Notes: generated from the sequence alone by a model not told the origin. Numbered from the stretch's first letter, positions 12,171-60,832 are shown. The stretch: 64,000 nt of DNA from Convolutriloba macropyga (GCF_964194025.1 NC_134468.1:17422001-17486000); one strand, 5' to 3'. Program-made: numbers and translations.

Positions 12171-12507
12171 GAATGGGTGGTCCGTAATTTTTCCATCAGT
12201 TTCAACGTAATTGATGGACCCAGAAATGGCAAATTTCAGTGTTCTTAGTTTTTGATAGCTTGGCACCTAAGAAAGTTTCTTTCACTTTCAAAGTTAATTG
12301 ATGGATCTAGAAATGACCATTTTTTGTGTTTGTTGGCTTTTTGTGGAGTAGTTTTAGTGAATTAACAGAAAAAGAAAGTTATTCGTGTTATGTAGCAATA
12401 AGATGTAAGTTAAATAATTATTTGTAGCATTTGGCCAAGAATATTTGAATTTCATAATACTGTGTGCTGATAGCCCTCTTTTCTCGCCTACTTATTGATT
12501 TCAGACA

Positions 12508-17014: not shown

Positions 17015-17635
17015 ACCACTAATTTGCAGGTGCAATGGTTTCAATACTGAATGACAGTGATGACGAATTGTTTTGAATAAAAACTTTTTTGAACTGTCAT
17101 TTTGGTAGAACAAGTCCTCGACGGACACGAGAAAGTCCAGATTATAGGTCCCTTTCAAGACGGAATTTGAGTTCCAACGTAACCCTAACTGCGTTTCAAT
17201 CTTTCCTTAGACTGACTTTGCTGAAAGTTCTGATAGGATTTTAAACTCGTTTTTCATCTCGGATTTTTATCATTTCGTAATGATTGCCATAAGATGTGTT
17301 GCCGTACCATGAAAAGTTGACAAAAACTAATCATTGTGAGGAGTATAACTAGCTTTTGATTTGTCTCGCTAGGGAAATTAGTTGTTGGAAATTTAATTTT
17401 TTAAAGTTCGCCTTATGATTTTCTGGAACTACTACTGAATTAATTTTTTTTGTCACTTATCCCATTGCAAAACATTGACGTCGCCTTCAAAGTTTATTAA
17501 CATCTGCCAGTACAAAGATGACAGATTTTTTCACTAAAAATTAATATCGACAAAATGTTCACCGATGACGGAGCTAAATAAGTGTGCTCACTTAAATCTG
17601 TACATGACACAGGATGTACTCAAGTTCCTGTTCGG

Positions 17636-22919: not shown

Positions 22920-22989
<70 letters not shown>

Positions 22990-25196
22990 CATATGTTTTT
23001 ATGTTTTGTTGTTTCTTATATATATATATATAGTTTTTTCGAAAATATTTATACACACACATATATATATATATTAAATATAATAAATTAAAAAAATTNN
23101 NNNNNNNNNNNNNNNNNNNNNNNNNNNNNNNNNNNNNNNNNNNNNNNNNNNNNNNNNNNNNNNNNNNNNNNNNNNNNNNNNNNNNNNNNNNNNNNNNNNN
23201 NNNNNNNNNNNNNNNNNNNNNNNNNNNNNNNNNNNNNNNNNNNNNNNNNNNNNNNNNNNNNNNNCTTTTTCAAGTGCTGGAGTTTTCGAAAAAGTCATAT
23301 CTATATCAGTCGAAAATGTGACCTGACCCATCACTTATAGAAGTCTCTTTTATAGGGTTTAATACTTTTTCTGGTAAATAATGTGTTACTTACCTTTACT
23401 GGTGTCGATGGAAAGCTGAAAAATTAATGTGAGCTGAAATCTGTTATTGAAATAGTTAAATAACAAATTAATTTGTTTTCGTTTCAGGATTGCTGATGAA
23501 AAATTATTGTGAGCTGAAATCTATTGTTGAAGTGGTTCCCGATTGATAATTGTCTTGTAATAATCAGGCGCATATTTGCATAACTATTTATAGGAATGTT
23601 ACTTTTAATACTGCTTTAAGTTTTTATATCAGCTCAAAAGGTGTGACTCTTATCTTTCGAACTGCCCTAGTCTATTACCGACGGCTATCTTGCAAGATCT
23701 TGCAAGAATCTTGCAAGAATCTTGTAAGATTACGCACCATCTTGCAAGATCTTGCAAGATTCTTGCAAGATCTTGCAAGATAGCCGTCGGATATGCAAGA
23801 ATCTTGCAAGATAAGCGTCGATCTTGTAAGATTCTTGCAAGATAGGCGTCGAACTCTTGCAAGATTCTTGCAAGATAAGCGTCGAAGTCTTGCAAGAATC
23901 TTGCAAGATAAGCGTCTGATTTTTGCAAGGGTCTTGCAAGATAAGCGACGAATTCTTGCAAGACCCTTGCAAAATGGGCGTCCGGAAACTTAGTCTTAGC
24001 TTGAGCGCGGGCCTTTTTGGCTTCTTTGCTGTCTAGAGTCGGTGCATTACTATGCTCCAGAAGGAGCGCACCTGATCTCTAGCCACCAAAGAAAAAAAAG
24101 ACCCTAAAGAGCTAAGACTAATGCGCGAAGGGGCCACAAACAACGGCGGGGGGTTATCGCGCTGCGCAAAAGGGGTCACAAACAAGGGCGGAAATGTAGC
24201 CTTAGCTCGGGCGTGGGCCTTTTTGGTTTCTTTGATGTCTAGAGTCGGTGCATTACTATGCTCCAGAAGGAGCGCACCTGATCTCTAGTCACCAAAGAAA
24301 AAAAAAGACCCGAAAGAGCTAAGACTAATGCGCGAAGGGGCCACAAAACAAAGGCGGGGGGTTATCGCGCTGCGCGAAGGGGTCACAAACAAGGCGGGGG
24401 GTTATCGCGCTGAAGAAAGGAAGAGACAAACATATAAATGAACATCTAAATGCATCAGAAAGGGGGCACAGAGAGGGGTGGGGTTATAGCACCGAAAAAA
24501 AGAAACATAAATGAACATCTAAATGCACAAGAAAGGGGGCACAGAGAAGGGTGGGGGGTTCAAGCGAACGAAAAACGGGCGAGCAAAACAGAAACGAACG
24601 AAAAACGAGCGAACGAAAAAACGAGCGAGCGTGAAAGCAGGCGAACGAAAAACGAGCGAGCCCAAAGCGAGCGAAACAAAGACGAACGAGCGTGGAAAGC
24701 AGGCGAACGAAAAACGAGTTAGCCCAAAGCAAGCGAAACAAAGACGAACGAGCGTGAAAGCAGGCGAACGAAAAACGAGCGAGCCCAAAGCGAGCGAAAC
24801 AAAGACGAGCGAGCGTGAAAGCAAGCGAACGAAAAACGAGCGAGCGCAAAGCGAGCGAAACAAAGACGAGCGAGCGTGAAAGCTAGCGAACGAAAAACGA
24901 GCGAGCGAAACAAAGACGAACGAGCGTGAAAGCAGGCGAACGAAAAACGAGCGAGCCCCAAAGCGAGCGAAACAAAGACGAACGAGCGTGAAAGCAAGGG
25001 AACGAAAAACGAGCGAGCGCAAAGGAGAGAAACAAAGACGAGCGAGCGTGAAAGAAAGCGAACGAAAAACAAGCGAGCGCAAAGCGAGAGAAACAAAAAC
25101 GAACGAGCGAAACCGAATTTGCCCGGAAGGCAATCCTAGAGAGAAAAAACCTTTGCCCTAGGGCAAAGAAAAGGAACAAATGCCCGGAGCGCAACA

Positions 25197-25239
<43 letters not shown>

Positions 25240-28200
25240 GAGAGAGCGAGAAAGAGAGAGAGCGCGAGNNNNNNNNNNNNNNNNNNNNNNNNNNNNNNNN
25301 NNNNNNNNNNNNNNNNNNNNNNNNNNNNNNNNNNNNNNNNNNNNNNNNNNNNNNNNNNNNNNNNNNNNNNNNNNNNNNNNNNNNNNNNNNNNNNNNNNNN
25401 NNNNNNNNNNNNNNNNNNNNNNNNNNNNNNNNNNNNNNNNNNNNNNNNNNNNNNNNNNNNNNNNNNNNNNNNNNNNNNNNNNNNNNNNNNNNNNNNNNNN
25501 NNNNNNNNNNNNNNNNNNNNNNNNNNNNNNNNNNNNNNNNNNNNNNNNNNNNNNNNNNNNNNNNNNNNNNNNNNNNNNNNNNNNNNNNNNNNNNNNNNNN
25601 NNNGCAAGAGACAGGAGAGACAGAGCAAGAAAAAAGAAACAACGAAAAGAGAGAGCACGTGGCCATAAAGCAACACAAACTCAAGAGTGATCGCTAAAAA
25701 GATAAAAGCAAATAAACACATAAAAGGCAATCAGGCAATATCAGAATTTTCATTACCTTAACTGTCGGTTATGATTTCATTCATCACTTTGCCTGATCAA
25801 GGACAAAACCAGAAACGCGCTTCAAAAATCATTTTTCTCTTTGGAGCATGATCATCGAACATATGACAAGGAGTTTGAAAAGCAAAAAAGGAGAACAGCA
25901 AAAAGAGAAAGACAGAGAGAGAGAGAGAGCTCCCGGCAACAGAAACTGGAGAATGAACACAAGAAAATGATAAGCAAATAAAATTTATAAAAAGCAATCA
26001 GGCAATCAGAATTTTGATTATCCTAATTTAAGGTTATAATTTCCGTTCATCACATTGCCTGATTCAGAAGAAAACAAGAAAAGCGCAGCGAAAATCATTT
26101 TTTTCATCATAGCGCAATCATCGAACATATGACAACAAGGAGTTTAAATGGCAAAAAAAGAGAAGAGCAAAAAGAGAAAGACACAGAGAGAGAGAGAGAA
26201 AGAGAGAGAGAGGGAGCTCCCAGCAACAAAAACTGGAGACTGAACACAATAAGCAAACAAAATTTTAAAAAGGCATTCAGGCAATCAGAATTTTGATTAT
26301 CCTAACTTAAGGTTATAATTTCAGTTCATCACATTGCCTGATTCAGAAGAAAACAAGGAGCGCTCCGAAAATCATTTTTCTCGTTATAGCGCAATCATCG
26401 AACATATGACAAGGAGTTTAAAAAGCAAAAAAGGAGAACAGCAAAAAGAGAAAGACAGACAGAGAGAGAGAGAGAGAGAGCTCCCAGCAACAGAAACTGG
26501 ACACTTAACACAAGAAAAAGATAAGAAAAGAAAAACTATAAAAGGCAATAAGGCAATCAGATTTTTGATTATCCTAACTTAAGGTTATAGTTTCAGTTCA
26601 TCACATTGCCTGATTCAGGATAAAACAAGAAGAGCGCTCCGAAAAGCATTTTTCTCATCATAGCGCAATCATCGAACATATGACAAGGAGTTTAAAGGCC
26701 AAAAAAAGAGAACAGCAAAAAGAGAAAGACAGAGAGAGAGAGAGAGAGAGCTCACAGCAACAGAAACTGGAGACTGAACACAAGGAAAAGATGAGCAAAG
26801 AAAATTCATAAAATGCGATCAGGCAATCAGAATTTTGACTATCCTAACTTAAGGTTGTAATTTCAGTTCATCACTTTGCCTGATTTAGAAAACACAAAAA
26901 GCGCTCCGAAAATCATTTTTCTCATCATAGCGCAATAATCGAATAGAAGCCAAGAAACAAATGAAAAAAAAAACAAAACGAAAGAACAAGTAGGAAACCA
27001 GCCGAGACAGAACTACAGACAAAGAGCACGCGAGCTCAAAGCAACAAAAACTGAAGAGTGAACCCAAAGAAGATAGAAGCAAAGGAAACACATGTACCAA
27101 TCAGGCAATCAGAATTTTGATTATCCTAACTTAAGGTTGTAATTTCAGTTCATCACATTGCCTGATTCAGGAGAAAACACGAAAGGCGTTCCGAAAATCA
27201 GTTTTCTCATCATAGCGCAATAATCGAATAGAAGCCAAGAAACAAATGAAAAACAAAACAAAACGAAAGAACAAGCAGGAAATCAGCCGAAACAGACCTA
27301 CAGACAAATAGCACGCGAGCTCAAAGCAACAAAAACTGAAGATTGAACGCAACGAAGAGAGACAAACAAAGGAAACACACAAGAGAATCAGGCCATCAGA
27401 ATTTTGATTACGCACTATGGTTGTAATTTCATCACTTTGCCTGATCAAGGACAAAACCAAAAACGCACTCCGAGAACAAATTTTCTCATCAAAGAACAAA
27501 TATCGAATAATTTGGAAGAAGTTGAAAAATCAACTATTACTATACAACTTTTTATGAACAAATTCACAAATGAAGAAAAAGGCATCGAAGAGTTGATTCT
27601 ACATTTATCTGCAACAACAACAACCAATCCAAATCAAACAATATACAGAAAAAGCAAGAGTCAGAAGAAATTGAATCAAAAGACAAAAGCACTCCGAGAA
27701 TCAATTTTCTCATCAAAGCGCAACTATCGAATAAATAGGAACAAGTTGAAAAATCAATTATTACTATACCACATTCTTTATCTACAAAGGCAAAAAAGGA
27801 AACAGGCTGATTCTACAACCAACCCAAGAAAGACAACATCAACAAGTTGAAAGAAAAAGCAAGAGTCAGAATAAATTAAATCAAAAGACAAAAGCACTCC
27901 GAGAATCAATTTTCTCATCATAGCGCAACTATCGAATAAATAGAACAAGTTGAAAAATCAATTATTACTATACCACATTCTTTATCTACAAAGGCAAAAA
28001 AAGGAAACAGGCTGATTCTACAACCAACCTAAGAAAGACAACATCAACAAGTTAAACGAAAAAGCAGGAGTCAGAATAAATTAAATCAAAAGACAAAAGC
28101 ACTCCGAGAATCAATTTTCTCATCATAGCGCAACTATCGAATAAATAGAACAAGTTGAAAAATCAATTATTATTACACCACATTCTTTATCTACAAAGGC

Positions 28201-31200
28201 AAAAAAGGAAACAGGCTGATTCTAGAACCAACCCAAGAAAGACAACATCAACAAGTTGAAAGAAAAAGCAAGAGTCAGAATAAATTAAATCAAAAGACAA
28301 AAGCACTCCAAGAATCAATTTTCTCATCATAGCGCAACTATCGAATAAATAGGAACAAGTTGAAAAATCAATTATCACTATACCACATTCTTTATCTACA
28401 AAAGGCAAAAAAAGGAAACAGGCTGATTCTACAACCAACCTAAGAAAGACAACATCAACAAGTTGAAAGAAAAAGCAAGAGTCAAAATAAATTAACTCAG
28501 AAGACACAAGAAACATTCAAATTACTTGAAAACTCGTGTACAGATTAGCCTATTTAGAAGGGCGAGCAAGTCACGCTGGCCATCAAAGGTCATATGACAA
28601 GGATCATTAAGTTTAAAATGTTTTGGCTTTAGTTTTGGTGCAACATAAAACTCCTTTAGTTCATGGTAAAGAATCTTATTTACAGTCTCCACATTATGGC
28701 TTTCCATATGGCGCCTTTTCCACATTCCAATTACAAGAACATTAGTGCCCTCACGCGATGCACACCTTGCGAAGCTTACTAAGTTGAGAGCTACTTCTTC
28801 GGGTTTTTTGGCAGGTATATCACGCCAATCTGCTAGGTCATTGTTTCCCACAGCAACAATAACAAAGTCGTATTGCTTAGCAGTCAGACTGACACAAGGG
28901 CCAAGCTCATGAGAACGCATGCCACTCATCGCCAGGACGTCAATTTGATAAGCACAGAGTAGCGGATCATTGTAGAGATCTGTTTTCAAATGTTTGACGT
29001 TGGAGTCACCGATTAACAGGAACGAGCTGAACAAAAAATTAGTATGAGTTGGAGCACAAAAAGCAGACGCGCGAAAGCAGAACAATTCAGGAGAAACAAA
29101 AAAAGGTAGCTTAGACAGTCATCCGCAAAATATGCTAAATTATTGACCTATTTGGTAGAAAATTTCGAAAGCTTATTTTATAAACTCAAGTGAAAGAAAC
29201 TTACAAATTTCCAATCAACAGCTTTGAGCTCTTCTTCACCAGTAACCTAAAATGACTGCGCAGTATCTTGAGGTAAATAGAAAATAATTAACGGCCGAGT
29301 CAAGGATTTGCAAAAATATTGATTCTACAGTCAACAAAAAATAATAAAAACTTTTCCAAATTATGATTGAGGCCACCTGCAAAAAAAGTTACTGACTCTA
29401 CAATCAGCAACAAAAAATCAATTATGTTCGAACCCTTCTCTGATAACGCTGACTTTCAGAACATTAGGCAGCGGACAAACAATTGACTTATATAACAAAT
29501 TTTCAACAAGACACAAATCTAGCGGTCCTAGCGTACTTAATTCAAAGCAAAAATTATAAGGAAATATATGATGATCGGGAATAACATTAAGTATGGCGAC
29601 ATCCAAAAAATATCTGACAACAGCATAGATGATGCCTTCAATTTTTACAAAGCATTGAACTTGAACAAATTTTTCATCTTTAAGTTGAACAACACTTTCG
29701 CCTAAGTTATCATTGAGTCTTGTATACGAAAGAGAACAGAATTTTTTCCCTTTGTCATTTACAAATCGCGAAAACTTACTTTCGGCATTCCGTTCATGAC
29801 AAAACACGTTTACCTCTTGGGACATTTTAGTGAAATTTTCAAGGCACTTATTTTTATTATCACCACTTACTTTTAACTCATCGACAGAATTTTGGTAGTT
29901 TAGGAAACGTTCAACCATTTTTTCAGGATTTTTTATTGTTCCAGAAAGTGCTGATAGAAGTTGGTGATTAGCCGACTCAAAGCAAAAAGCAGAAAAAAGC
30001 CAGAGTGGACCATTTCTTCGGACTTGTTCTACTAAATGTCGCATTGTGTGGAAATTGTATGATTGGGATTCGGCCCCATATAACTCAATAAAGTTTTCAA
30101 AGAAAGAGTTAATCAATAATTCAGCGGGTTCAAGGTTTGTAACAGCAAAATTGCCATCGGATAAAAGTCTTATAGCAAAACTTAACTTACAAAAACTCTC
30201 CAGATGAAGATTTGAGATACCTAAATTATCGAAGACGAGTGGGCCAATATGAAAAAAAAGAGTTTGAAGTCAAACGCTTTCCAAAATGACAAATCTTTCA
30301 ATTTTTTTGTTCGATGAAGTATATCGAAGGGTATACAGCATTTTGAAACACGATATTCGAGCTCTTTTAATTTGTTTCCTTTTGCTAATGAAATGAGAAA
30401 TTTGGAAAGAACTTTTCCGGTGCCTAAAAAGACTTGATGCATGGGATCAATAGGACAATCCCACGGCAAATTAAAAAACGTAATGAGAGGGGTTAGAGAT
30501 TTTACGCCATTAACAGTTATTTGCTTTTGATCAGCTGTTTCACCACAAGCTCTGAACGTATCATTCTCGCGGAGAATAAAAGCCTTAGAGACCTTGAAGA
30601 GCATTCTATTACTCTGGTGGAAACCTTTTATGAAACAATGGGGACAACTTTGGTAACCCATATGCTGCTTCATACACAAGACGTACGCCGTCGCTGGTGC
30701 ATCACAAACAATACTTCTGTAACGGAAAAACACTCGCCCACATGCCTCTAGATTCACTCCACTGGAATAACTTTCTAACTCAAAGCAAATTCTTATTAAA
30801 AGTTCGGTAAAATCAGGCTTCAATTCGCCGTACCACAATCCAAGAAGACATATATTAGCATAGCATGACCTTAACACTGGAGGCAAATTGAATATTTGTA
30901 CCCAAATAGGCCATACTGACAACTTTTTTGATTTAAAAACTGGCGCTCCGTCGGTATTAAATACAAGCTGAAGTTCAAAGTTGCAGAAAGCGTCGGAAGC
31001 GGTCTCCCAATCGCAGGAACTAGACCAAGATCGCTGTATATAGGAAAAATGTTTTTTAACTATTCGATTTACCTGAGGAACTAAGTCAACCATAAGCAAT
31101 TTTGAGGCACCGAAAGATGTTGTTGACACTAACGGGAGATTTGAAGACGCAATTTCCGCAAAAACATTGTTGGGATAGGGCAAAACGCTGGCAAAAAGTT

Positions 31201-34200
31201 TCAAGAAGTCATTTCTTGCGGAGTCCGAGAGCTTATGCTTAATCGAAATCTTAGAAAATTTTTGCAAAAAATCATCATGAGATATATCAGTTCCCTCGTA
31301 AAGAAAACTACTTAAGCAGCCAAGCTCAGGCAAGTTTTGATCAACTAAGTCATTGGGCGCATTTTCATCTTCAAAACTACGTAAATTTGCAGGTGATGAG
31401 CAAACAAAATTTTCTGACTGAAATTGGCTGTCAGCTGTTGGCCGATTCAAAAAAACGTCAGATTCAGATGCATCAGGAGGAAGATTTTCGTCATTGCTTT
31501 CAGTCCCAACTGAAGACGTAGACGAGCTATAACACTTTTTAGTATAATCAAGTGAACTAAAGAGAGATTCATAGGTTAAGTATTCTGGTGTATCAGTTAG
31601 TTTTTCTTCGGGGAAGAACATTTTTAAGCGGGACGGAAAACTTTGGCGCGACGCTGGACCAATTTTTTTTTGCTTTTTTTACTTTACTTTTCTTATAACC
31701 CCTTCTTCGTTTAACTGCTATCTCAGGAAACGGATTTCCATGGCGGCTTTTATACGGACATAGACAATACTGATTGTTGGGACCAAAAAAATGATTTTGA
31801 TATGACACAGTTAGTTCCTCTCCTTCCTTTATCTCCCTTAAGGGAACACACACCATAATATTTTTAACATTAACATAGGCTACATTTGGCTTGCATGACG
31901 CATTGATAAAGGATATTGGCCCAAGCATTAACCATTGAACACCTTTTCTAGGGCTTTCCATTACTGAAAAATCATTGTAGCCGGGAACAATTTCATCTTC
32001 TTTTATGTCAACGAGAAAGCCTACAAGCCCGGGTATTTCTAATTTTGAGTCGATATCACATTTAGCAAAAACTCCTAGTTGGGAATAATTAGCGTCAGTT
32101 AGATAATCTACTGGACCAAAAATTACCAGTTTTTGACTTTTAGCATACTCTGAATCCAAAAAACTTTCGAGATCCGAGAGATAAGCGGGCGGGCAATCAA
32201 GATAAAGAGAAACCTTATGGGCTTGAACTCCAATAACGTCCACCCACTTCTCGGTCAACTTTGCGTCCACAAATGCTAGCTCCTGCCATGTAACAGGAAG
32301 ATTGCTCAATTGTTGCGCAATTGGAAGGTAGAGTTTGTACTTTTTGTGATCAAGTATAGACATTTCATCTGGAATTAATATTCAAGTCAGATAACGTAGA
32401 GAAAAATTTGAAAAAACAGAAGTAAAAAACATAACTGGCAGATTGCCAGAAAATGGCCGCAATAGCTTTGTAGATCTGCAGTCTCAAAAAAAGTAAAAAA
32501 AAAAAGACTTCATTGAGAGCTGAGATCTCACATTTTGATTAAGAATCTACAAGTAATTGCTGCCTCTATTAGCTGCTCTCAAATAATCTTCATTTAGAGG
32601 GACACACAATCAATTGACCTTAACTCTTTGAATTAGGGTAAACAACAGCTAGGAAATCATTTTCAGAGTGAGGTTAGTCACGTGTGACCAAAAACTTAAT
32701 CTCGTGAATGAACAGAAAACTCAGCGCTCCAAAACGAGCGAAAAATCAGGTCACGCACGCAATTGTTGAAATTGCATGAACAAAAGAAAAAAACGAGTTT
32801 GAAGTAATTGCTATGTCATATGGTCGTAACAAAAATCTTGAAGACGAAAAAAAACCAAGACAAGCCGAATAATAGACTCAGCTATCGCTTCGCGGCTATT
32901 AAAAAGGACAAAACTATTTTCATATTGAAAAAACATGGCATATTAATTTTCTTTATTCAGTTCAGCCTTCTCATGTCGTCCCAGAGAATTGGCGGCATCT
33001 TTAGCCCTTCTAAGCGCATAAAGGCTATCGCCGCAAATAAGCCTCACAGCTTCTGAAACAAAAAAAATGCAAGGGCAGAAAAATGGAATTAGAATTTAGA
33101 AATGTCGGGCACAACCTTTGAAATGATATTCGTCTTCCGCTGATGCTAGCTTGCGCGCCGGTTGTTTAACATTGTTCCTCTGAACAAACCAACAGAACTC
33201 CAATCTCTCCTCTTTTGAATGTATCGCTCTAGCGAGAAATCGGCCGACAGACGCATAATCATGGCGACAACCGGCATAACTTAGCAGATCGTTTCCTTTG
33301 TATACAAGTCTTTCGTTAGCCGAAGCTCTTTGTGCTTTCACGCGTTTATCATTCTAAAAAGAAAAAAACCATAGTTGCTACCAACTATAGAAAGAATAAA
33401 AGCCGCCAAAATTAATTGAACAAATACTTACAAGTTCTTTCAGGGCACGAGAAACATCTAACATCCGATTTCTCGACTCAACTTCAACAACATTACTTCG
33501 CCGTATACACCCCTCAAGGGTTTCTATATTAGTCAGAACTGTTTGCAACCCCTCATAGAGAGAAACCATTTTACTATCTAAAAAAAGATGACAAGTGAAG
33601 CCTCTAGTTTAAGGGGAAATTTAGCAGCCACAACATATAACTACAAAAAAATTACCGAAGAAATATTGAATTCCGGAAAGGCGTCAGTTTTTTTCTCAAA
33701 AAATCAACCACATCAGAAAACAACACAGCTTTTAGTCAAAACTACTCCTGACATTTTATTGCACACTAACAACTGCTCTTTTCTCTCGCAGACGTTGGTT
33801 AACAAGTTTTAATGAATCACGATACAATTTGTTGGTATATTGGTCACCAAATGCGAATTTCACTGCTTTTTGATACAGTTCCGTTCTTTCATGATCTCCC
33901 GGTTTTCGTCCACTTTGTGGGTCTAAGGTCTTTTTGGGATCGATGCAAAGAGACATTCTTTCTTCCTCGGTCCAAAGAGCTTTTGCAATATTGAAGGCTT
34001 TCTCAACAAATGTAGCGCCACCAACGTTAAACAGATTTTGATCGCCAAACATTAGAACAGGCACTTCCTCTTTGGCAGCCTCCTCGGAAACATAATCTTT
34101 CTCCGCATTACGAGACAAAAGAACAGGAGTTTCAGCGATTCGATAGATTTCATCTAAAGCACGTCTGGAGAACTTGGTCAGATCGTCTAGTAGCCGGTCA

Positions 34201-46200: not shown

Positions 46201-49200
46201 CGTATGATTGACTATATTGTGTGTACTATATGTTTTTTCTCTCTCAGTTGATTACTGAAATTTGGTTTTTTGTGTCCTTGCTACCTATTAATGATTCAAA
46301 GTGAATGGAGTCACAGAAAAGTCTCATTTACAGAACAAAAAGTCGATTATAACATTATATAGCATAAGCAGGAACGCTCTGGATGCTTTTTATGACCTAT
46401 TTTAGTTTTTACCAAGTGATTCACACTTAGTGTGAATAGAATGAACCATTGAAACGATGATTGAAACTTTTTTTGGGAAACGAGTATTTCAAACACGTTA
46501 TTGACGTTAAAGTTGCTATGAAACATTCCGATTAGGCCCGAGAGAAAAATAATTTTAAGGCAAAAAATTTTTGGACCCTATTTTTCTTCCTTAATCTGTG
46601 TGTTAGCTTCAATAGAAGTGCCGTTAAGCTATAGGATTATCTTAAAAGGGATTAGAAGGTTGATAAAAGTGACCGTTTACGTTTTTCGCCAGGTACATGT
46701 TTAATCATTGAAAAACGTTATAATATCGTAACACAAAACGTATGATTGACTATATTGGGGGACTATCTGCTTTATCCCTCTCAATTGGTTACTTGAATTT
46801 GGTTCTTTGTGTCTTTGCTACCTATTAATGATTCAAAGTGAATGGACTCACAGAAAAGTCTCATTTACAGAAGGAACAAAAAGTCAATTATAACATTATA
46901 TAGCATAAGCAGGAACGCTCTGGTTGCTTTTTTACGACCTATTTTAGTGTTTACCAAGTGATTCACACTTAGTGTGAATAGAATGAACCATTGAAACGAT
47001 GATTAAAACTTTTTTGGGGAAACGAGTCTTTCAAACTTGTTATCGACGGTAAAGTTAATATGAAACATTCCGATTAGGCCCGAGAGAAAAATAATTTTCA
47101 GGCAAAAAATTTTTGGAACCTGTTTTTCTTCCATAATCTGTGTGTTAGCTTCAGTAGAAGTGCCGTTAAGCTATAGGATTACTTTACAAGGGATTAGAAG
47201 GTTGATAAAAGTGACCGTTTACGTTTTTCGCCAGGTACATGTTTAATCATTGAAAAACGTTATAATATCGTAACACAAAACGTATGATTGACTATATTGG
47301 GTGTACTATATGTTTTTTCTCTCTCAGTTGATTACTGACATTTGGTTTTTTGTGTCCTTGCTACCTATTAATGATTCAAAGTGAATGGACTCACAGAAAA
47401 GTCTCATTTAAGGAACAAAAAGTCGATTATAACATTATATAGCATAAGCAGGAACGCTCTGGATGCTTTTTTTTGACCTATTTTAGTGTTTACCAAGTGA
47501 TTCACACTTAGTGTGAATAGAATGAACCATTGAAACGATGATTGAAACTTTTTTGGGGAAACGAGTATTTCAAACACGTTATTGACGTTAAAGTTGATAT
47601 GAAACATTCCGATTAGGCCCGAGAGAAAAATAATTTTAAGGCAAAAAATTTTTGGACCCTGTTTTTCTTCCTTATTCTGTGTGTTAGCTTCAGTAGAAGT
47701 GCCGTTAAGCTATACGATTACCTTAAAAGGGATTAGAAGGTTGATAAAAGTGACCGTTTACGTTTTTCGCCAGGTACATGTTTAATCATTGAAAAACGTT
47801 ATAATATCGTAACACAAAACGTATGATTGACTATATTGTGTGTACTATATGTTTTTTCCCTCTCAGTTGATTACTGACATTTGGTTTGTTGTGTCTTTGC
47901 TACCTATTAATGATTCAAAGTGAATGGACTCACAGAAAAGTCTCATTTAAGGAACAAAAAGTCGATTATAACATTATATAGCATAAGCAGGAACGCTCTG
48001 GATGCTTTTTTTTGACCTATTTTAGTGTTTACCAAGTGATTCACACTTAGTGTGAATAGAATGAACCATTGAAACGATGATTGAAACTTTTTTGGGGAAA
48101 CGAGTATTTCAAACACGTTATTGACGTTAAAGTTGATATGAAACATTCCGATTAGGCCCGAGAGAAAAATAATTTTAAGGCAAAAAATTTTTGGACCCTG
48201 TTTTTCTTCCTTATTCTGTGTGTTAGCTTCAGTAGAAGTGCCGTTAAGCTATACGATTACCTTAAAAGGGATTAGAAGGTTGATAAAAGTGACCGTTTAC
48301 GTTTTTCGCCAGGTACATGTTTAATCATTGAAAAACGTTATAATATCGTAACACAAAACGTATGATTGACTATATTGTGTGTACTATATGTTTTTTCCCT
48401 CTCAGTTGATTACTGACATTTGGTTTGTTGTGTCTTTGCTACCTATTAATGATTCAAAGTGAATGGACTCACAGAAAAGTCTCATTTAAGGAACAAAAAG
48501 TCGATTATAACATTATATAGCATAAGCAGGAACGATCTGGTTGCTTTTTTATGACCTATTTTAGTGTTTACCAAGTGATTCACACTTAGTGTGAATAGAA
48601 TGAACCATTGAAACGATGATTGAAACTTTTTTTGGGAAACGAGTTTTTGAAACACGTTATTGACGTTAAAGTTGATATGAAACATTCCGATTAGGCCCGA
48701 GAGAAAAATAATTTTAAGGCAAAAAATTTTTGGATCCTATTTTTCTTCCTTATTCTGTGTGTTAGCTTCAGTAGAAGTGCCGTTAAGCTATAGGATTACC
48801 TTAAAAGGGATTAGAAGGTTGATAAAAGTGACCGTTTACGTTTTTCGCCAGGTACATGTTTAATCATTGAAAAACGTTATAATATCGTAACACAAAACGT
48901 ATGATTGACTATATTGGGTGTACTATATGTTTTTTCTCTCTCAGTTGATTACTGACATTTGGTTTTTTGTGTCCTTGCTACCTATTAATGATTCAAAGTG
49001 AATGGACTCACAGAAAAGTCTCATTTAAGGAACAAAAAGTCAATTATAACATTATATAGCATAAGCAGGAACGCTCTGGTTGCTTTTTTACGACCTATTT
49101 TAGTGTTTACCAAGTGATTCACACTTAGTGTGAATAGAATGAACCATTGAAACGATGATTAAAACTTTTTTGGGGAAACGAGTCTTTCAAACTTGTTATC

Positions 49201-52200
49201 GACGGTAAAGTTAATATGAAACATTCCGATTAGGCCCGAGAGAAAAATAATTTTCAGGCAAAAAATTTTTGGAACCTGTTTTTCTTCCATAATCTGTGTG
49301 TTAGCTTCAGTAGAAGTGCCGTTAAGCTATAGGATTACTTTACAAGGGATTAGAAGGTTGATAAAAGTGACCGTTTACGTTTTTCGCCAGGTACATGTTT
49401 AATCATTGAAAAACGTTATAATATCGTAACACAAAACGTATGATTGACTATATTGGGTGTACTATATGTTTTTTCTCTCTCAGTTGATTACTGACATTTG
49501 ATTTTTTGTGTCCTTGCTACCTATTAATGATTCAAAGTGAATGGACTCACAGAAAAGTCTCATTTAATCAACAAAAAGTCGATTATAACATTATATAGCA
49601 TAAGCAGGAACGCTCTGGTTGCTTTTTTATGACCTATTTTAGTGTTTACCAAGTGATTCACACTTGGTGTGAATAGAATGAACCATTGAAACGATGATTA
49701 AAACTTTTTTGGGGAAACGAGTCTTTCAAACATGTTATTGACGTTAAAGTTGATATGAAACATTCCGATTAGGCCCGAGAGAAAAATAATTTTAAGGCAA
49801 AAATTTTTTGGACCCTATTTTTCTTCCTTATTCTGTGTGTTAGCTTCAGTAGAAGTGCCGTTAAGCTATAGGATTACCTTAAAAGGGATTAGAAGGTTGA
49901 TAAAAGTGACCGTTTACGTTTTTCGCCAGGTACATGTTTAATCATTGAAAAACGTTATAATATCGTAACACAAAACGTATGATTGACTATATTGTGTGTA
50001 CTATATGTTTTTTCTCTCTCAGTTGATTACTGACATTTGATTTTTTGTGTCTTTGCTACCTATTAATGATTCAAAGTGAATGGACTCACAGAAAAGTCTC
50101 ATTTAAGGAACAAAAAGTCGATTATAACATTATATAGCATAAGCAGGAACGCTCTGGATGCTTTTTTTTGACCTATTTTAGTGTTTACCAAGTGATTCAC
50201 ACTTAGTGTGAATAGAATGAACCATTGAAACGATGATTGAAACTTTTTTGGGGAAACGAGTATTTCAAACACGTTATTGACGTTAAAGTTGATATGAAAC
50301 ATTCCGATTAGGCCCGAGAAAAATAATTTTAAGGCAAAAAATTTTTGGACCCTGTTTTTCTTCCTTATTCTGTGTGTTAGCTTCAGTAGAAGTGCCGTTA
50401 AGCTATACGATTACCTTAAAAGGGATTAGAAGGTTGATAAAAGTGACCGTTTACGTTTTTCGCCAGGTACATGTTTAATCATTGAAAAACGTTATAATAT
50501 CGTAACACAAAACGTATGATTGACTATATTGTGTGTACTATATGTTTTTTCTCTCTCAGTTGATTACTGACATTTGGTTTTTTGTGTCTTTGCTACCTAT
50601 TAATGATTCAAAGTGAATGGACTCACAGAAAAGTCTCATTTAAGGAACAAAAAGTCGATTATAACATTATATAGCATAAGCAGGAACGATCTGGTTGCTT
50701 TTTTATGACCTATTTTAGTGTTTACCAAGTGATTCACACTTGGTGTGAATAGAATGAACCATTGAAACGATGATTAAAACTTTTTTGGGGAAACTAGTCT
50801 TTCAAACATATTATCGACGGTAAAGTTAATATGAAACATTCCGATTAGGCCCGAGAGAAAAATAATTTTAAGGCAAAAAATTTTTGGAACCTACTTTTCT
50901 TCCATAATCTATGTGTTAGCTTCAGTAGAAGTGCCGTTAAGCTATAGGATTACTTTACAAGGGATTAGAAGGTTGATAAAAGTGACCGTTTACGTTTTTC
51001 GCCAGGTACATGTTTAATCATTGAAAAACGTTATAATATCGTAACACAAAACGTATGATTGACTATATTGTGTGTACTATATGTTTTTTCTCTCTCAGTT
51101 GATTACTGACATTTGGTTTTTTGTGTCTTTGCTACCTATTAATGATTCAAAGTGAATGGACTCACAGAAAAGTCTCATTTAAGGAACAAAAAGTCGATTA
51201 TAACATTATATAGCATAAGCAGGAACGATCTGGTTGCTTTTTTATGACCTATTTTAGTGTTTACCAAGTGATTCACACTTGGTGTGAATAGAATGAACCA
51301 TTGAAACGATGATTAAAACTTTTTTGGGGAAACTAGTCTTTCAAACATATTATCGACGGTAAAGTTAATATGAAACATTCCGATTAGGCCCGAGAGAAAA
51401 ATAATTTTAAGGCAAAAAATTTTTGGAACCTACTTTTCTTTCATAATCTATGTGTTAGCTTCAGTAGAAGTGCCGTTAAGCTATAGGATTACTTTACAAG
51501 GGATTAGAAGGTTGATAAAAGTGACCGTTTACGTTTTTCGCCAGGTACATGTTTAATCATTGAAAAACGTTATAATATCGTAACACAAAACGTATGATTG
51601 ACTATATTGGGTGTACTATATGTATTTTCTCTCTCAGTTGATTACTGACATTTGATTTTTTGTGTCCTTGCTACCTATTAATGATTCAAAGTGAATGGAC
51701 TCACAGAAAAGTCTCATTTAAGGAACAAAAAGTCGATTATAACATTATATAGCATAAGCAGGAACGCTCTGGTTGCTTTTTTATGACCTATTTTAGTGTT
51801 TACCAAGTGATTCACACTTGGTGTGAATAGAATGAACCATTGAAACGATGATTAAAACTTTTTTGGGGAAACGAGTCTTTCAAACATGTTATCGACGGTA
51901 AAGTTAATATGAAACATTCCGATTAGGCCCGAGAGAAAAATAATTTTAAGGCAAAAAATTTTTGGACCCTATTTTTCTTCCTCAATCTGTGTGTTAGCTT
52001 CAGTAGAAGTGCCGTTAAGCTATAGGATTACTTTACAAGGGATTAGAAGTTTGATGAAAGTGACCGTTTACTTTTTTCGCCAGGTACATGTTTAATCATT
52101 GAAAAACGTTATAATATCGTAACACAAAACGTATGATTGACCATATTGGATGTACTATATGTTTTTTCTCTCTCAGTTGATTACTGGCATTTGGTTTTTT

Positions 52201-55200
52201 GTGTCCTTGCTACCTATTAATGATTCAAAGTGAATGGACTCACAGAAAAGTCTCATTTACAGAACAAAAAGTCGATTATAACATTATATAGCATAAGCAG
52301 GAACGCTCTGGATGCTTTTTTATGACCTATTTTAGTGCTTACCAAATGATTCACACTTAGTGTGAATAGAATGAACCATTGAGACGATGATTAAAACTTT
52401 TTTGGGGAAACGAGTCTTTCAAACATGTTATTGACGTTAAAGTTGATATGAAACATTCCGATTAGGCCCGAGAGAAAAATAATTTTAAGGCAAAAAATTT
52501 TTGGACCCTATTTTTCTTCCTTATTCTGTGTGTTAGCTTCAGTAGAAGTGTCGTTAAGCTATAGGATTACCTTAAAAGGGATTAGAAGGTTGATAAAAGT
52601 GACCGTTTACGTTTTTCGCCAGGTACATGTTTAATCATTGAAAAACGTTATAATATCGTAACACAAAACGTATGATTGACCATATTGGATGTACTATATG
52701 TATTTTCTCTCTCAGTTGATTACTGACATTTGATTTTTTTGTCCTTGCTACCCATTAATGATTCAAAGTGAATGGACTCACAGAAAAGTCTCATTTAAGG
52801 AACAAAAAGTCGATTATAACATTATATAGCATAAGCAGGAACGCTCTGGTTGCTTTTTTATGACCTATTTTAGTGTTTACCAAGTGATTCACACTTGGTG
52901 TGAATAGAATGAACCATTGAAACGATGATTAAAACTTTTTTGGGGAAACGAGTCTTTCAAACATGTTATTGACGTTAAAGTTGATATGAAACATTCCGAT
53001 TAGGCCCGAGAGAAAAATAATTTTAAGGCAAAAAATTTTTGGACCCTATTTTTCTTCCTTATTCTGTGTGTTAGCTTCAGTAGAAGTGCCGTTAAGCTAT
53101 AGGATTACCTTAAAAGGGATTAGAAGGTTGATAAAAGTGACCGTTTACGTTTTTCGCCAGGTACATGTTTAATCATTGAAAAACGTTATAATATCGTAAC
53201 ACAAATTGTATGATTGACTATATTGTGTGTACTATATGTTTTTTCTCTCTCAGTTGATTACTGACATTTGGTTTTTTGTGTCCTTGCTACCTATTAATGA
53301 TTCAAAGTGAATGGAGTCACAGAAAAGTCTCATTTACAGAACAAAAAGTCGATTATAACATTATATAGCATAAGCAGGAACGCTCTGGATGCTTTTTTAT
53401 GACCTATTTTAGTGTTTACCAAGTGATTCACACTTAGTGTGAATAGAATGAACCATTGAAACGATGATTGAAACTTTTTTTGGGAAACGAGTATTTCAAA
53501 CACGTTATTGACGTTAAAGTTGATATGAAACATTCCGATTAGGCCCGAGAGAAAAATAATTTCAAGGCAAAAAATTTTTGGACCCTATTTTTCTTCCTTA
53601 ATCTGTGTGTTAGCTTCAGTAGAAGTGCCGTTAAGCTATAGGATTATCTTAAAAGGGATTAGAAGGTTGATAAAAGTGACCGTTTACGTTTTTCGCCAGG
53701 TACATGTTTAATCATTGAAAAACGTTATAATATCGTAACACAAAACGTATGATTGACTATATTGGGGGGACTATCTGCTTTATCCCTCTCAATTGGTTAC
53801 TTGAATTTGGTTCTTTGTGTCTTTGCTACCTATTAATGATTCAAAGTGAATGGACTCACAGAAAAGTCTCATTTACAGAACAAAAAGTCGATTATAACAT
53901 TATATAGCATAAGCAGGAACGCTCTGGATGCTTTTTTATGACCTATTTTAGTGTTTACCAAGTGATTCACACTTGGTGTGAATAGAATGAACCATTGAAA
54001 CGATGATTAAAGTTTTTTTGGGGAAACAAGTCTTTCAAACATGTTATCGACGGTAAAGTTGATATGAAACATTCCGATTAGGCCCGAGAGAAAAATAATT
54101 TTAAGGCAAAAAATTTTTGGACCCTATTTTTTTCCTCAATCTGTGTGTTAGCTTCAGTAGAAGTGCCGTTAAGCTATAGGATTACCTTAAAAGGGATTAG
54201 AAGGTTGATAAAAGTGACCGTTTACGTTTTTCGCCAGGTACATGTTTAATCATTGAAAAACGTTATAATATCGTAACACAAAACGTATGATTGACTATAT
54301 TGGGTGTACTATATGTATTTTCTCTCTCAGTTGATTACTGACATTTGATTTTTTGTGTCCTTGCTACCTATTAATGATTCAAAGTGAATGGACTCACAGA
54401 AAAGTCTCATTTACAGAACAAAAAGTCGATTATAACATTATATAGCATAAGCAGGAACGCTCTGGATGCTTTTTTATGACCTATTTTAGTGTTTACCAAG
54501 TGATTCACACTTGGTGTGAATAGAATGAACCATTGAAACGATGATTAAAACTTTTTTCGGGAAACAAGTCTTTCAAACATGTTATCGACGGTAAAGTTGA
54601 TATGAAACATTCCGATTAGGCCCGAGAGAAAAATAATTTTAAGGAAAAAAATTTTTGGACCCTATTTTTCTTCCTTATTCTGTGTGTTAGCTTCAGTAGA
54701 AGTGTCGTTAAGCTATAGGATTACCTTAAAAGGGATTAGAAGGTTGATAAAAGTGACCGTTTACGTTTTTCGCCAGGTACATGTTTAATCATTGAAAAAC
54801 GTTATAATATCGTAACACAAAACGTATGATTGACTATATTGGGTGTACTATATGCATTTTCTCTCTCAGTTGATTACTGACATTTGATTTTTTGTGTCCT
54901 TGCTACCTATTAATGATTCAAAGTGAATGGACTCACAGAAAAGTCTCATTTACAGAACAAAAAGTCGATTATAACATTATATAGCATAAGCAGGAACGCT
55001 CTGGATGCTTTTTTTTACCTATTTTAGTGTTTACCAAGTGATTCACACTTGGTGTGAATAGAATGAACCATTGAAACGATGATTAAAACTTTTTTGGGGA
55101 AACAAGTCTTTCAAACATGTTATCGACGGTAAAGTTGATATGAAACATTCCGATTAGGCCCGAGAGAAAAATAATTTTAAGGCAAAAAATTTTTGGACCC

Positions 55201-58200
55201 TATTTTTCTTCCTCAATCTGTGTGTTAGTTTCAGTAGAAGTGCCGTTAAGATATAGGATTACTTTACAAGGGATTAGAAGGTTGATAAAAGTGACCGTTT
55301 ACGTTTTTCGCCAGGTACATGTTTAATCATTGAAAAACGTTATAATATCGTAACACAAAACGTATGACTGACTATATTGGGGGGACTATCTGCTTTTTCC
55401 CTCTCAATTAATTACTTGAATTTGGTTCTTTGTGTCTTTGCTACCTATTAATGATTCAAAGTGAATGGACTCACAGAAAAGTCTCTTTACAGAACAAAAA
55501 GTCGATTATAACATTATATAGCATAAGCAGGAACGCTCTGGATGCTTTTTTATGACCTATTTTAGTGTTTACCAAGTGATTCACACTTGGTGTGAATAGA
55601 ATGAACCATTGAAACGATGATTAAAACTTTTTGGGGGAAACAAGTCTTTCAAACATGTTATCGACGGTAAAGTTGATATGAAACATTCCGATTAGGCCCG
55701 AGAGAAAAATAATTTCAAGGCAAAAAATTTTTGGACCCTATTTTTCTTCCTCAATCTGTGTGTTAGTTTCAGTAGAAGTGCCGTTAAGCTATAGGATTAC
55801 CTTAAAAGGGATTAGAAGGTTGATAAAAGTGACCGTTTACGTTTTTCGCCAGGTACATGTTTAATCATTGAAAAACGTTATAATATCGTAACACAAAACG
55901 TATGATTGACTATATTGGGTGTACTATATGTATTTTCTCTCTCAGTTGATTACTGACATTTGATTTTTTGTGTCCTTGCTACCTATTAATGATTCAAAGT
56001 GAATGGACTCACAGAAAAGTCTCATTTACAGAACAAAAAGTCGATTATAACATTATATAGCATAAGCAGGAACGCTCTGGATGCTTTTTTATGACCTATT
56101 TTAGTGTTTACCAAGTGCTTCACACTTGGTGTGAATAGAATGAACCATTGAAACGATGATTAAAACTTTTTTGGGGAAACAAGTCTTTCAAACATGTTAT
56201 CGACGGTAAAGTTGATATGAAACATTCCGATTAGGCCCGAGAGAAAAATAATTTTAAGGCAAAAAATTTTTGGACCCTTTTTTTCTTCCTCAATCTGTGT
56301 GTTAGTTTCAGTAGAAGTACCGTTAAGCTATAGGATTACTTTACAAGAGATTAGAAGGTTGATAAAAGTGACCGTTTACGTTTTTCGCCAGGTACATGTT
56401 TAATCATTGAAAAACGTTATAATATCGTAACACAAAACGTATGATTGACTATATTGGGGGGACTATCTGCTTTATCCCTCTCAATTGGTTACTTGAATTT
56501 GGTTCTTTGTGTCTTTGCTACCTATTAATGATTCAAAGTGAATGGACTCACAGAAAAGTCTCATTTACAGAACAAAAAGTCGATTATAACATTATATAGC
56601 ATAAGCAGGAACGCTCTGGATGCTTTTTTATGACCTATTTTAGTGTTTACCAAGTGATTCACACTTGGTGTGAATAGAATGAACCATTGAAACGATGATT
56701 AAAACTTTTTTGGGGAAACAAGTCTTTCAAACATGTTATCGACGGTAAAGTTGATATGAAACATTCCGATTAGGCCCGAGAGAAAAATAATTTTAAGGCA
56801 AAAAATTTTTGGACCCTATTTTTCTTCCTCAATCTGTGTGTTAGCTTCAGTAGAAGTGCCGTTAAGCTATAGGATTACCTTAAAAGGGATTAGAAGGTTG
56901 ATAAAAGTGACCGTTTACGTTTTTCGCCAGGTACATGTTTAATCATTGAAAAACGTTATAATATCGTAACACAAAACGTATGATTGACTATATTGGGTGT
57001 ACTATATGTATTTTCTCTCTCAGTTGATTACTGGCATTTGATTTTTTGTGTCCTTGCTACCTATTAATGATTCAAAGTGAATGGACTCACAGAAAAGTCT
57101 CATTTAAGGAACAAAAAGTCGATTATAACATTATATAGCATAAGCAGGAACGCTCTGGATGCTTTTTTTTGACCTATTTTAGTGTTTACCAAGTGATTCA
57201 CACTTAGTGTGAATAGAATGAACCATTGAAACGATGATTGAAACTTTTTTGGGGAAACTAGTCTTTCAAACATATTATCGACGGTAAAGTTAATATGAAA
57301 CATTCCGATTAGGCCCGAGAGAAAAATAATTTTAAGGCAAAAAATTTTTGGAACCTACTTTTCTTTCATAATCTATGTGTTAGCTTCAGTAGAAGTGCCG
57401 TTAAGCTATAGGATTACTTTACAAGGGATTAGAAGGTTGATAAAAGTGACCGTTTACGTTTTTCGCCAGGTACATGTTTAATCATTGAAAAACGTTATAA
57501 TATCGTAACACAAAACGTATGATTGACTATATTGGGGGGACTATCTGCTTTTTCCCTCTCAATTGGTTACTTGAATTTGGTTCTTTGTGTCTTTGCTACC
57601 TATTAATGATTCAAAGTGAATGGACTCACAGAAAAGTCTCATTTACAGAACAAAAAGTCGATTATAACGTTATATATCATAAGCAGGAACGCTCTGGATG
57701 CTATTTTATGACCTTTTTTAATGCTTACCAAGTGATTCACACTTGTTGTGAACAGAATGAACCATTGAAACGATCATTGAACAATTTCTCCTGAAATGAG
57801 AGTTTCAAATATTTTGTTGAAAGCAGAAGTGATATGAAAGTTTCTGTTTTGAACAGAGAGCTCCCTTTGACGTCTGAACTCATAAGAGAAAAGGATCATT
57901 GAGTTAATAGGACTTTAAAATTTCACTTTTTTCTTGAACATTTTTCGACGTCTATCTTGCAAGATCTTGCAAGGTTCTTGCAAGATAGGCGTCCGGATCT
58001 TGCATCTTGCAAGATAAGCGTCATTTGCAAGAATCTTGCAAGATCTTGCAAGATAAGCGTCATTTGCAAGAATCTTGCAAGATCTTGCAAGATAAGCGTC
58101 GGAGTTCGACTAGGGTGATATAAAAATTAATGCAGTATTAAATAAAACATTCCTATTATAAGCGGTTTACTTTTCAAATTACCTCCAATTTTGTACGAGC

Positions 58201-60708: not shown

Positions 60709-60832
60709 AGTAGTGGATAAAACAAGGATTCCAACCACCAGTAAAATTTGTCCATTTCTCCTAACGCTAATCGCGCATGTCGAATCGGGCCAAATTTTAC
60801 TGTTTGTTGGAATCCTTGTTTTATCCACTACT
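60709..60832. mobile_element. ~124-bp foldback/MITE-like element
   Basis: AGTAGTGGATAAAACAAGGATTCCAAC...CAGTAAAATTTG pairs with CAAATTTTACTG...GTTGGAATCCTTGTTTTATCCACTACT. Confidence 0.75.

Follow-up and report, generated by a model that had tools for sequence, protein, structure and literature searches.

A recently mobile 34.5-kb CMC-type DNA transposon carrying a Suv4-20-like SET domain fused to its transposase, predicted BEN-fold proteins, an SGNH hydrolase and an 18-kb satellite array

Transposons that carry their own epigenetic enzymes are rare, and those known come from fungi, oomycetes and plants. Fungal KDZ, Plavaka and other DNA transposons, including CMC-related ones, carry TET/JBP dioxygenases, and plant VANDAL elements carry the anti-silencing factor VANC (PMC12730594); these modifiers act on DNA methylation and are not fused to the transposase. 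HarbingerS and MuDR families of Phytophthora, which belong to other superfamilies, carry SET-domain histone methyltransferase genes (Kojima & Jurka 2014, as cited in PMC12730594), although the citing paper says only that SET genes were ‘incorporated’ and does not report a fusion to the transposase or a Suv4-20-type SET. A SET domain lying N-terminal to a DDE-type transposase in one protein occurs in primate SETMAR/Metnase, but SETMAR is a single-copy, immobile, domesticated host gene, in which a host exon was joined to a mariner transposase. SGNH/GDSL esterases are encoded in non-LTR retrotransposon ORF1 (PMC3905857), bdelloid LTR retrotransposons (PMC5408684) and a Helitron capture (PMC4021074), all of them cases in which the function has not been established. 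The CMC (CACTA/Mirage/Chapaev) superfamily, including maize En/Spm, is characterized by 5'-CMC termini, a short target duplication, dense subterminal repeats, large size, internal tandem repeats and, in En/Spm, a second element-encoded DNA-binding protein (TnpA) beside the transposase. Here we analyzed a 64,000-nt stretch of the 1.18-Gb Convolutriloba macropyga genome (GCF_964194025.1 NC_134468.1:17422001-17486000; hereafter, the window). A preliminary description made from this sequence alone had reported a CACTA-type element at 23665-58115 packaging a histone-methyltransferase/transposase fusion, two BEN proteins, an SGNH hydrolase and a satellite, and our analysis confirmed that this observation is real.

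We first examined the boundaries of the unit. The terminal inverted repeats lie at 23665-23716 (plus strand, starting CCCTAGTC) and 58064-58115 (minus strand, ending GACTAGGG); they are 52 nt long and 87% complementary, and the dinucleotide TG flanks them at 23663-23664 and 58116-58117. The boundary at 23665 is shared by at least 30 genomic copies and that at 58115 by about 40 genomic matches, and the ends are sharp in at least 30 copies at 93-100% identity. All 20 paired copies that we checked have matching, copy-specific 2-bp duplications, comprising nine different dinucleotides. An inverted repeat that flanks the insertion in the window proved not to be a general target feature. The termini (CCC...GGG) and the 2-bp duplication agree with the 5'-CMC termini and 2-5-bp duplications of the CMC superfamily, but differ from the 3-bp duplication and CACTA ends of En/Spm, and also from the 3-4-bp duplication and invariable CAC...GTG termini that define Chapaev (PMC4079192).

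Next, we asked whether the same ends enclose the same contents elsewhere in the genome, which had been set beforehand as the condition that could overturn the description, and found that they do so in many other copies. At least 15 end-paired copies are 21-47 kb long, and 12 of these 15 have a scored gene-block match; matches were also scored next to single ends of further copies. The satellite was read directly in one complete copy of a second subfamily (B; the window copy belongs to subfamily A) and was seen in three other copies in a monomer search in which 3 of 1049 candidate places were scored, whereas for most long copies its presence is inferred from coordinates and lengths. Short copies, including some of 0.8-1.4 kb, are internal-deletion derivatives with different breakpoints that still hold part of the last satellite monomer. 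An assembly gap at 25269-25603 lies between GA-rich low-complexity stretches in the non-coding left arm and breaks no gene, so that reading frame is not at issue. The distance from the left end to the gene block is 4736 bp in the window, 4736 bp in another copy (C5) and 4399-5841 bp in five other subfamily-A copies; judged from this spacing, order and orientation across the gap match other copies.

All of the genes are on the minus strand. The largest, at 29418-32363, encodes the SET-transposase fusion. In the window copy this frame is split into three pieces, at 31593-32363 (SET) and at 30221-31621 and 29418-30116 (transposase), a point on which the preliminary description needed correction. 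The breaks are two 1-nt length differences in homopolymer runs, an A7 run at 31680 and a T8 run at 30260, which may be real or may be assembly errors; the T8 break is shared by 8 of 9 subfamily-A copies examined. In less damaged copies the SET and transposase parts form one reading frame of about 980 aa (a single 984-aa ORF in L021 and a continuous 976-aa open frame in L030), many copies in this genome have intact frames, and full-length homologues of 985-1008 aa exist in lineages that are only 42-47% identical. The fusion is genuine. In an alignment of six fusion proteins, the CMC transposase motifs, read by eye against the published pattern (PMC12730594), are all invariant: NTDG, CDAPA, C-x-H-C, H-TMR-H and FESAN, that is, D (30941-30958), D (30692-30706), CxxC (30635-30646), H(3)H (30036-50) and E (29967-84). 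Pfam DUF1258 and Transposase_21 are the only transposase models hit; these hits have E-values of 4e-6 to 2e-3 but lie below the curated cut-offs, and the same two families are recorded for many homologues.

The SET core is most similar to KMT5B/KMT5C (SUV420H1/H2), with E-values of 3e-19 (KMT5B) to 2e-17 for KMT5B/C chains against 1.6e-3 for the next SET family, and an NDFSVM.S.RK strand aligns with the H4-tail-contacting residues of KMT5B (PMC10697951). However, the canonical NHxC cofactor-binding motif and post-SET cysteine cluster are not retained: in all six aligned sequences FINASC stands in place of FINHDC, so that His is replaced by Ala, and CLCPYKS stands in place of CECYTC, with loss of the third Cys of CxCxxC. 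The Asn of the NH motif and the Tyr of the EL...Y motif are kept, and the N-terminal domain and C-terminal arginine anchors of KMT5B/C did not align. The altered NHxC motif and the incomplete cysteine cluster leave catalysis by this domain in doubt.

We also analyzed the smaller genes. The BEN1 exon (33756-34262; 168 aa) encodes a coiled coil and a domain whose AlphaFold2 model has a mean pLDDT of 87. The top 11 PDB hits and the top 24 Swiss-Prot hits of this model are all BEN domains, with probabilities of mostly 0.7-0.99 in the PDB list and 0.25-0.97 in the Swiss-Prot list, and most compact domain alignments have an rmsd of 2.5-3.7 A over 76-97 columns, although the Foldseek E-values are weak (0.2-1). 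Atlas feature hits to BEN clusters score 0.87-0.88. In contrast, none of 30 family members matches the Pfam BEN profile (PF10523) at E 0.01, and a family profile found no BEN chain in the PDB. Thus, the BEN assignment, which the preliminary description had made without this qualification, rests on predicted fold only. The BEN2 gene (32943-33569; 161 aa) consists of three exons (33569-33432, 33353-33116 and 33052-32943) joined by GT-AG introns; it is a paralogue of BEN1 (profile search E 7e-11) and is 74% identical between subfamilies A and B, with saturated synonymous sites. The SGNH/GDSL-type hydrolase gene (28522-29085) contains catalytic blocks I, II, III and V in order, namely GDSN (28999-29010), G (28918-28932), GNND (28837-28848) and DPCH (28594-28605). 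Pfam GDSL models match only weakly (E 0.02-0.06), whereas the nearest Atlas clusters are GDSL families at 0.94. This separate small gene is conserved downstream of the fusion in every lineage examined.

A further conserved coding exon, absent from the preliminary description, lies upstream at 34748-35428 (ORF 34715-35428) and is predicted to encode a small beta-barrel plus an acidic linker. It probably splices onto BEN1 (donor 34747, acceptor 34263), since the homologues P0034 and P0054 carry this domain fused to a BEN1-like part, and since in subfamily B, where BEN1 has no ATG, the donor and acceptor are conserved and in phase. The exon is conserved in five lineages. The core of the predicted barrel (residues 55-170) has a pLDDT above 90, and the Tudor domains of KDM4A/B/C and ARID4 are among its best hits, but these matches are weak, with E-values of 0.1-0.5 and only one chain reaching Z 5; Y67, F68, D71 and W84 are invariant in the five-lineage alignment, without an aromatic cage having been demonstrated. 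The same gene order occurs in ocean-metagenome contigs. Between the two subfamilies, pN is 0.16-0.29 and pS is 0.72-0.95 for all genes, indicating purifying selection.

The non-coding arms contain the 539-bp satellite, of which about 33.7 monomers with a mean identity of 96% lie at 39724-57860 (18.1 kb). The same array, 89% identical and about 22 monomers long, is present in the complete subfamily-B copy, and another subfamily-A copy has 9 monomers. In a distant lineage, an array with nearly the same period (about 528 bp) lies at the equivalent end-proximal place; nhmmer and blastn found no similarity between the two arrays. The two subfamilies thus share near-identical ends and the satellite while the synonymous sites of their genes are saturated, which points to modular exchange between elements. 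The subterminal fields hold a palindrome, TCTTGCAAGA, with 15 copies at 23687-23972 on the left and 7 copies at 57955-58092 on the right. The window holds 22 copies in all against 0.18 expected by chance, they occur only in the subterminal fields, and the palindrome is absent from the satellite. The same 10-mer clusters at the end of a lineage whose fusion protein is only 44% identical. The best structural match of BEN1, BANP, recognizes TCTCGCGAGA (PMC10206803).

Based on these results, we propose, with a probability of about 0.85, that the region is one copy of a large autonomous-type cut-and-paste transposon of the CMC superfamily that was mobile very recently. It differs from En/Spm in its duplication and ends, in having BEN-fold proteins as putative accessory binders instead of TnpA, in the N-terminal SET domain of its transposase and in its SGNH gene. 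It also differs from SETMAR in that the fusion lies inside hundreds of mobile copies and the SET is of another family. A literature search, which did not extend to Repbase or Dfam, found no description of a Suv4-20-type SET fused to a CMC transposase. What the analysis demonstrates is the defined ends, the target duplication, the many copies and a gene set conserved under purifying selection (a two-exon gene for a small barrel, a coiled coil and a predicted BEN fold; a three-exon paralogue with a coiled coil and a predicted BEN fold; the SET-transposase fusion; and the SGNH hydrolase), whereas the mechanism, including expression and splicing of the proposed exons, methyltransferase activity and DNA binding, is inferred. 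In this view, the transposase would cut at the CCC termini and insert with a 2-bp stagger. The BEN proteins, as dimers, would act like maize TnpA by binding the 22 subterminal palindromes and bringing the ends together; this binding is pure inference, and we regard it as only slightly more likely than not. The SET domain would dock the transposase on the nucleosomal H4 tail, and either methylate H4K20 around the donor or target site, for example to steer break repair or self-silencing, or serve only as a tether, these two alternatives being about equally likely. The satellite array would expand and contract by unequal exchange and travel with the element; a role for it is possible but not shown. 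If the two frame breaks in the window copy are real, then this copy depends on transposase supplied by other copies.

We also considered other explanations. The preliminary description had interpreted the element as a mobile chromatin-programming cassette carrying a writer, sequence-specific binders and a satellite substrate, and this interpretation is only partly supported: the CMC-type transposon, the fusion, the Suv4-20-like SET, the two BEN-fold proteins (by predicted fold) and the SGNH hydrolase hold, but the SET domain as an active H4K20 writer, binding of the satellite by the BEN proteins, and the satellite as a substrate rather than a tolerated or structural expansion remain hypotheses. 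The Suv4-20-like character and strong conservation of the SET domain, the conservation of the gene module over deep divergence, the 528-bp array of the distant lineage and the weak matches of the barrel to H4K20me-binding Tudor domains are in favor of an element whose SET domain di/tri-methylates H4K20 on its own BEN-bound satellite, so that each insertion seeds a heterochromatin island. However, the NH motif reads N-A in all lineages and the likelier BEN target is the palindrome, which is absent from the satellite, and the Tudor match is weak; this reading seems unlikely. A broader form, equally unlikely, is that a widespread family of marine-animal transposons carries its own chromatin toolkit, comprising a Suv4-20-type SET domain fused to the transposase, a barrel-BEN and a BEN DNA binder, and an end-proximal array of about 530 bp that different lineages acquired independently, writing or reading H4K20 methylation at its own ends or arrays to control break repair or self-silencing; if this speculation is true, then each jump would plant a new satellite or heterochromatin island on chromosome arms.

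Alternatively, the SET domain may be a catalytically dead module that binds the nucleosome or H4 tail and only tethers the transposase to chromatin, for target choice or retention. The altered NHxC and post-SET motifs and the retained H4-contacting strand agree with this, but the retained Asn and Tyr, and conservation as strong as expected for an enzyme, do not, and we hold this possibility only tentatively. It is somewhat more likely than not that the satellite and other internal repeats are passengers without function, arising by unequal exchange or slippage in a large element that tolerates cargo. Monomer number varies widely (9, about 22 and about 34 in three copies, with other values inferred from copy lengths), several unrelated tandem repeats fill the non-coding arms, and deletion derivatives lacking nearly all of the array still have intact ends and target duplications, which suggests that they moved. 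On the other hand, the array is retained in both subfamilies despite the saturation of synonymous sites, and an independent array occupies the equivalent place in the distant lineage. The possibility that the unit is an artefact (two short elements flanking unrelated DNA, genes belonging to a nested insertion, or a misjoin at the gap) is suggested by the gap and by the existence of short copies, but it is already largely refuted, because the same order of left arm, gene block, spacer, satellite and right end recurs in many copies on different chromosomes, the duplications match across the whole unit, and the spacing across the gap equals that of other copies. The element offers a natural system for asking what a SET domain does for transposition, which immobile SETMAR cannot answer. 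In addition, satellite arrays of 10-25 kb are moved around chromosome arms by cut-and-paste, which bears on how satellites spread and how new heterochromatin or centromere-like arrays are seeded.

Tandem repeat analysis of the window copy also detected subterminal 10/33-bp units, a 40-bp repeat (x2), a 61-bp repeat of about 8 units (24563-25112), (GA)n, a 270/285-bp repeat of about 4 units (26169-27431), a 359-bp repeat of 2.4 units in the 4-kb spacer (36875-37737), a 39-bp unit at the right end, and a 205-bp repeat of 4.2 units (27647-28510) whose copy number varies between copies of the element.

We first examined the run of N at positions 25269-25603, which lies between GA-rich low-complexity stretches in the non-coding left arm of the element, about 3 kb from the nearest gene. 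The only ORFs that cross it are mechanical ones that read through N, so that reading frame is not at issue. Coordinates alone argue against a misjoin at this point: the left end lies 4736 bp from the gene block here, 4736 bp in the copy designated C5, and 4399-5841 bp in five other copies of the same subfamily (subfamily A, see below). In addition, a complete copy of a second subfamily (subfamily B), which contains no N, shows the same order of parts.

Next, we analyzed the ends of the element. The two arms, at 23665-23716 and 58064-58115, are 52 nt long and 87% complementary. A search of the element's own genome showed that similarity to other copies starts exactly at 23665 in at least 30 places and stops exactly at 58115 in about 40 places, at 89-100% identity. 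When the ends were paired by contig, we obtained 15 long copies of 21-47 kb and about nine short copies of 0.7-1.4 kb. In all 20 pairs with both ends readable, the two flanking bases were the same on both sides and differed between copies (TT, TA, AA, AT, TG, CG, AG, GA and CC), which represents a 2-bp target duplication. The target duplications of these 20 insertions (among loci L002-L066, the numbered genomic loci) are W-rich, 15 of 20 being TT, TA, AA or AT, and there is a mild target preference, in that upstream positions -7 to -3 tend towards T-G-A-A-C, with A at position -4 in 15 of 20 sites. The left flank is single-copy in the genome. The insertion sits inside a 42-nt host inverted repeat (23590-23631 and 58116-58156; alignment score 57, against a maximum of 30 in shuffles), which lies 33 nt from the left arm and directly abuts the right arm. 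However, only one other of the 20 insertions shows such a flank repeat, so it is not a general target feature. The satellite consists of about 33.7 monomers of 539 bp (39724-57860), with a mean identity of 96% and no distance decay, and the other tandem repeats are as the preliminary description had given them.

It had been proposed beforehand that the element could be tested by asking whether other copies of its ends enclose the same genes. To investigate this, we used a 7.2-kb query of the gene block, and found the block between or beside paired ends on many chromosomes, in two forms. Subfamily A, of about 10 copies, is 94-100% identical to the window, whereas subfamily B, of about 13 copies, is only 66-73% identical, and only in coding parts. 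The complete subfamily-B copy is 27,188 bp long; its left arm is 97% identical to the window and its satellite, of about 22 monomers, is 89% identical. In the genes, however, synonymous sites are saturated between the subfamilies (pS 0.72-0.95) while pN is 0.16-0.29, and the 4-kb spacers are unrelated (loci L021-L024 compared with 23665-58115). Therefore, all the genes are under purifying selection, and the cis-acting parts have been exchanged or homogenised between the two lineages; this mosaic implies recombination or module swapping between element lineages. The short copies are internal deletions with different breakpoints that still hold part of the last satellite monomer, and another subfamily-A copy has only nine monomers.

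We then analyzed the gene that encodes the SET domain and the transposase. In the window, the SET ORF (31593-32363), the transposase ORF (30221-31621) and a C-terminal ORF (29418-30116) are in different frames. In the subfamily-B copy L021 they form one 984-aa ORF, and in the subfamily-A copy L030 they form one 976-aa open frame. Against L030, the window differs by single bases in an A7 run at 31680 and a T8 run at 30260, although L030 itself differs near its start. The frame break at the T8 run is shared by eight of nine subfamily-A copies, even though these copies are 99-100% alike and evidently moved recently, and about half of all indels among copies lie in homopolymers. The differences may be real mutations or systematic assembly error, and the shared break could reflect a systematic homopolymer under-call, mobilisation in trans, or slippage at the run. 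If the breaks are real, this copy is non-autonomous, or slippage at the run is used. Full-length fusions of 985-1008 aa that are only 42-47% identical exist in public assemblies, and one of them is encoded 100% identically in this same genome, which holds many further lineages, many with uninterrupted frames.

The SET core matches KMT5B/KMT5C at E-values of 3e-19 to 2e-17, while the next SET family is at 1.6e-3, and the strand NDFSVM.S.RK aligns with the KMT5B residues that hold the H4 tail (PMC10697951). However, the NHxC motif reads N-A-S-C in all six aligned sequences, and the post-SET CxCxxC lacks its third Cys. The transposase part has the CMC pattern of D, D, C(2)C, H(3)H and E, and among profile models it gives hits to DUF1258 and Transposase_21 only, both of them sub-threshold.

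For BEN1 (33756-34262), neither the protein nor any of its 29 aligned relatives matched the Pfam BEN model, and a search of the PDB with its profile found no BEN chain. A confident structural model (pLDDT 87) nevertheless shows a long coiled coil plus a helical domain, and the best 11 PDB matches and the best 24 Swiss-Prot matches of this model are all BEN domains, namely those of BANP, Insv, NACC1/2, BEND2-7 and Elba2. The BEN assignment is therefore supported at the level of the predicted fold and not by sequence. BEN2 is, as predicted from sequence, a three-exon gene with GT-AG introns and is a paralogue of BEN1 (E 7e-11). An identical 12-mer (GTTGGTAGCAAC on the minus strand, at 34281-34292 and 33374-33385, and at positions 173 and 1272 of L021), with arms GTTG/CAAC that are extendable to GGTTG N4 CAACC, lies 20-30 nt upstream of the 3' splice sites of the BEN1 intron and of BEN2 intron 1. 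It is perfectly conserved between subfamilies whose surrounding DNA is about 70% identical, and it occurs nowhere else in the window and not in more distant lineages, so that it could be a splicing or regulatory signal.

An ORF upstream of BEN1 (34715-35428) is conserved in five lineages. Its core is a predicted small barrel with weak Tudor matches, and in the AlphaFold cluster library its best matches are the N-terminal parts of invertebrate proteins annotated as BEN-domain proteins. Two relatives, P0034 and P0054, carry this domain and a BEN1-like part in one protein. In subfamily B, BEN1 has no ATG, and a conserved, in-phase donor (34747) and acceptor (34263) would join the two exons into a protein of about 395 aa. 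With that splice there are four genes, which is the number given in the preliminary description. The SGNH gene has all four catalytic blocks, together with weak GDSL profile hits and GDSL neighbours in the Atlas. The order barrel-BEN1, BEN2, SET-transposase, SGNH recurs in contigs from ocean metagenomes, including Tara.

We also analyzed the subterminal regions. The palindrome TCTTGCAAGA occurs 22 times in the window against 0.18 expected, and all copies lie in the subterminal fields, 15 on the left and seven on the right, with none in the satellite. The same 10-mer is clustered nine times at the end of a distant lineage in the same genome, whose fusion protein is only 44% identical. There it follows an array of at least 7 kb with a 528-bp period (L046, positions 15588-22958, and L045, positions 8611-16115, two loci of this lineage), which lies downstream of the SGNH gene of that lineage and has no detectable similarity to the 539-bp satellite. 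BANP, the closest structural match of BEN1, recognises TCTCGCGAGA (PMC10206803), which differs from the palindrome at two symmetric positions. From this we infer, by analogy alone, that the BEN proteins may be the end-binding factors of the element, comparable to TnpA of En/Spm.

These results confirm the observation that was made from the sequence alone: the ends, the 2-bp target duplication, the recurrence of the gene block between them and the purifying selection on its genes all come directly from the comparison of copies, and the element is real and recently mobile. The interpretation that accompanied the observation is supported only in part. That the element acts as a chromatin writer remains a hypothesis, which is weakened by the N-A motif, and methyl transfer by the SET domain and any role of the satellite are to be regarded as possible only, whereas binding of the ends by the BEN proteins and the probable splice that joins the barrel exon to BEN1 are inferred. 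The independent array with nearly the same period, at the same place in a distant lineage, is the most intriguing unexplained point.

The element belongs to the CMC superfamily, but it is not Chapaev, since it has a 2-bp duplication and CCC ends (PMC4079192). SET genes in DNA transposons have been reported for HarbingerS and MuDR of Phytophthora, and TET/JBP genes for fungal CMC-related elements (PMC12730594). SGNH esterases are found in retroelements (PMC3905857, PMC5408684), and a SET-transposase fusion occurs as the immobile host gene SETMAR. In a literature search, which did not extend to Repbase or Dfam, we found no description of a Suv4-20-type SET fused to a mobile CMC transposase together with BEN proteins and end-proximal satellites. 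It is this combination, within a superfamily that is already established, that appears to be new.

Host genes near the insertion appear as single open frames, namely THOC7 (12508-13158; E 4e-23), ubiquitin-ribosomal protein S27a (16496-17014; E 5e-25) and a C2H2 zinc-finger fragment (62216-62554). Therefore, the element sits in gene-bearing DNA and not in a repeat desert. A (TA)36 microsatellite (22922-22994) lies about 670 bp left of the element. Elsewhere in the window we found a small MITE-like unit (203-626) with 46-nt inverted arms (96% complementary) enclosing a 31-bp tandem repeat (314-478), and a 45-nt inverted repeat (60709-60832; 93% complementary) with a 34-nt loop.
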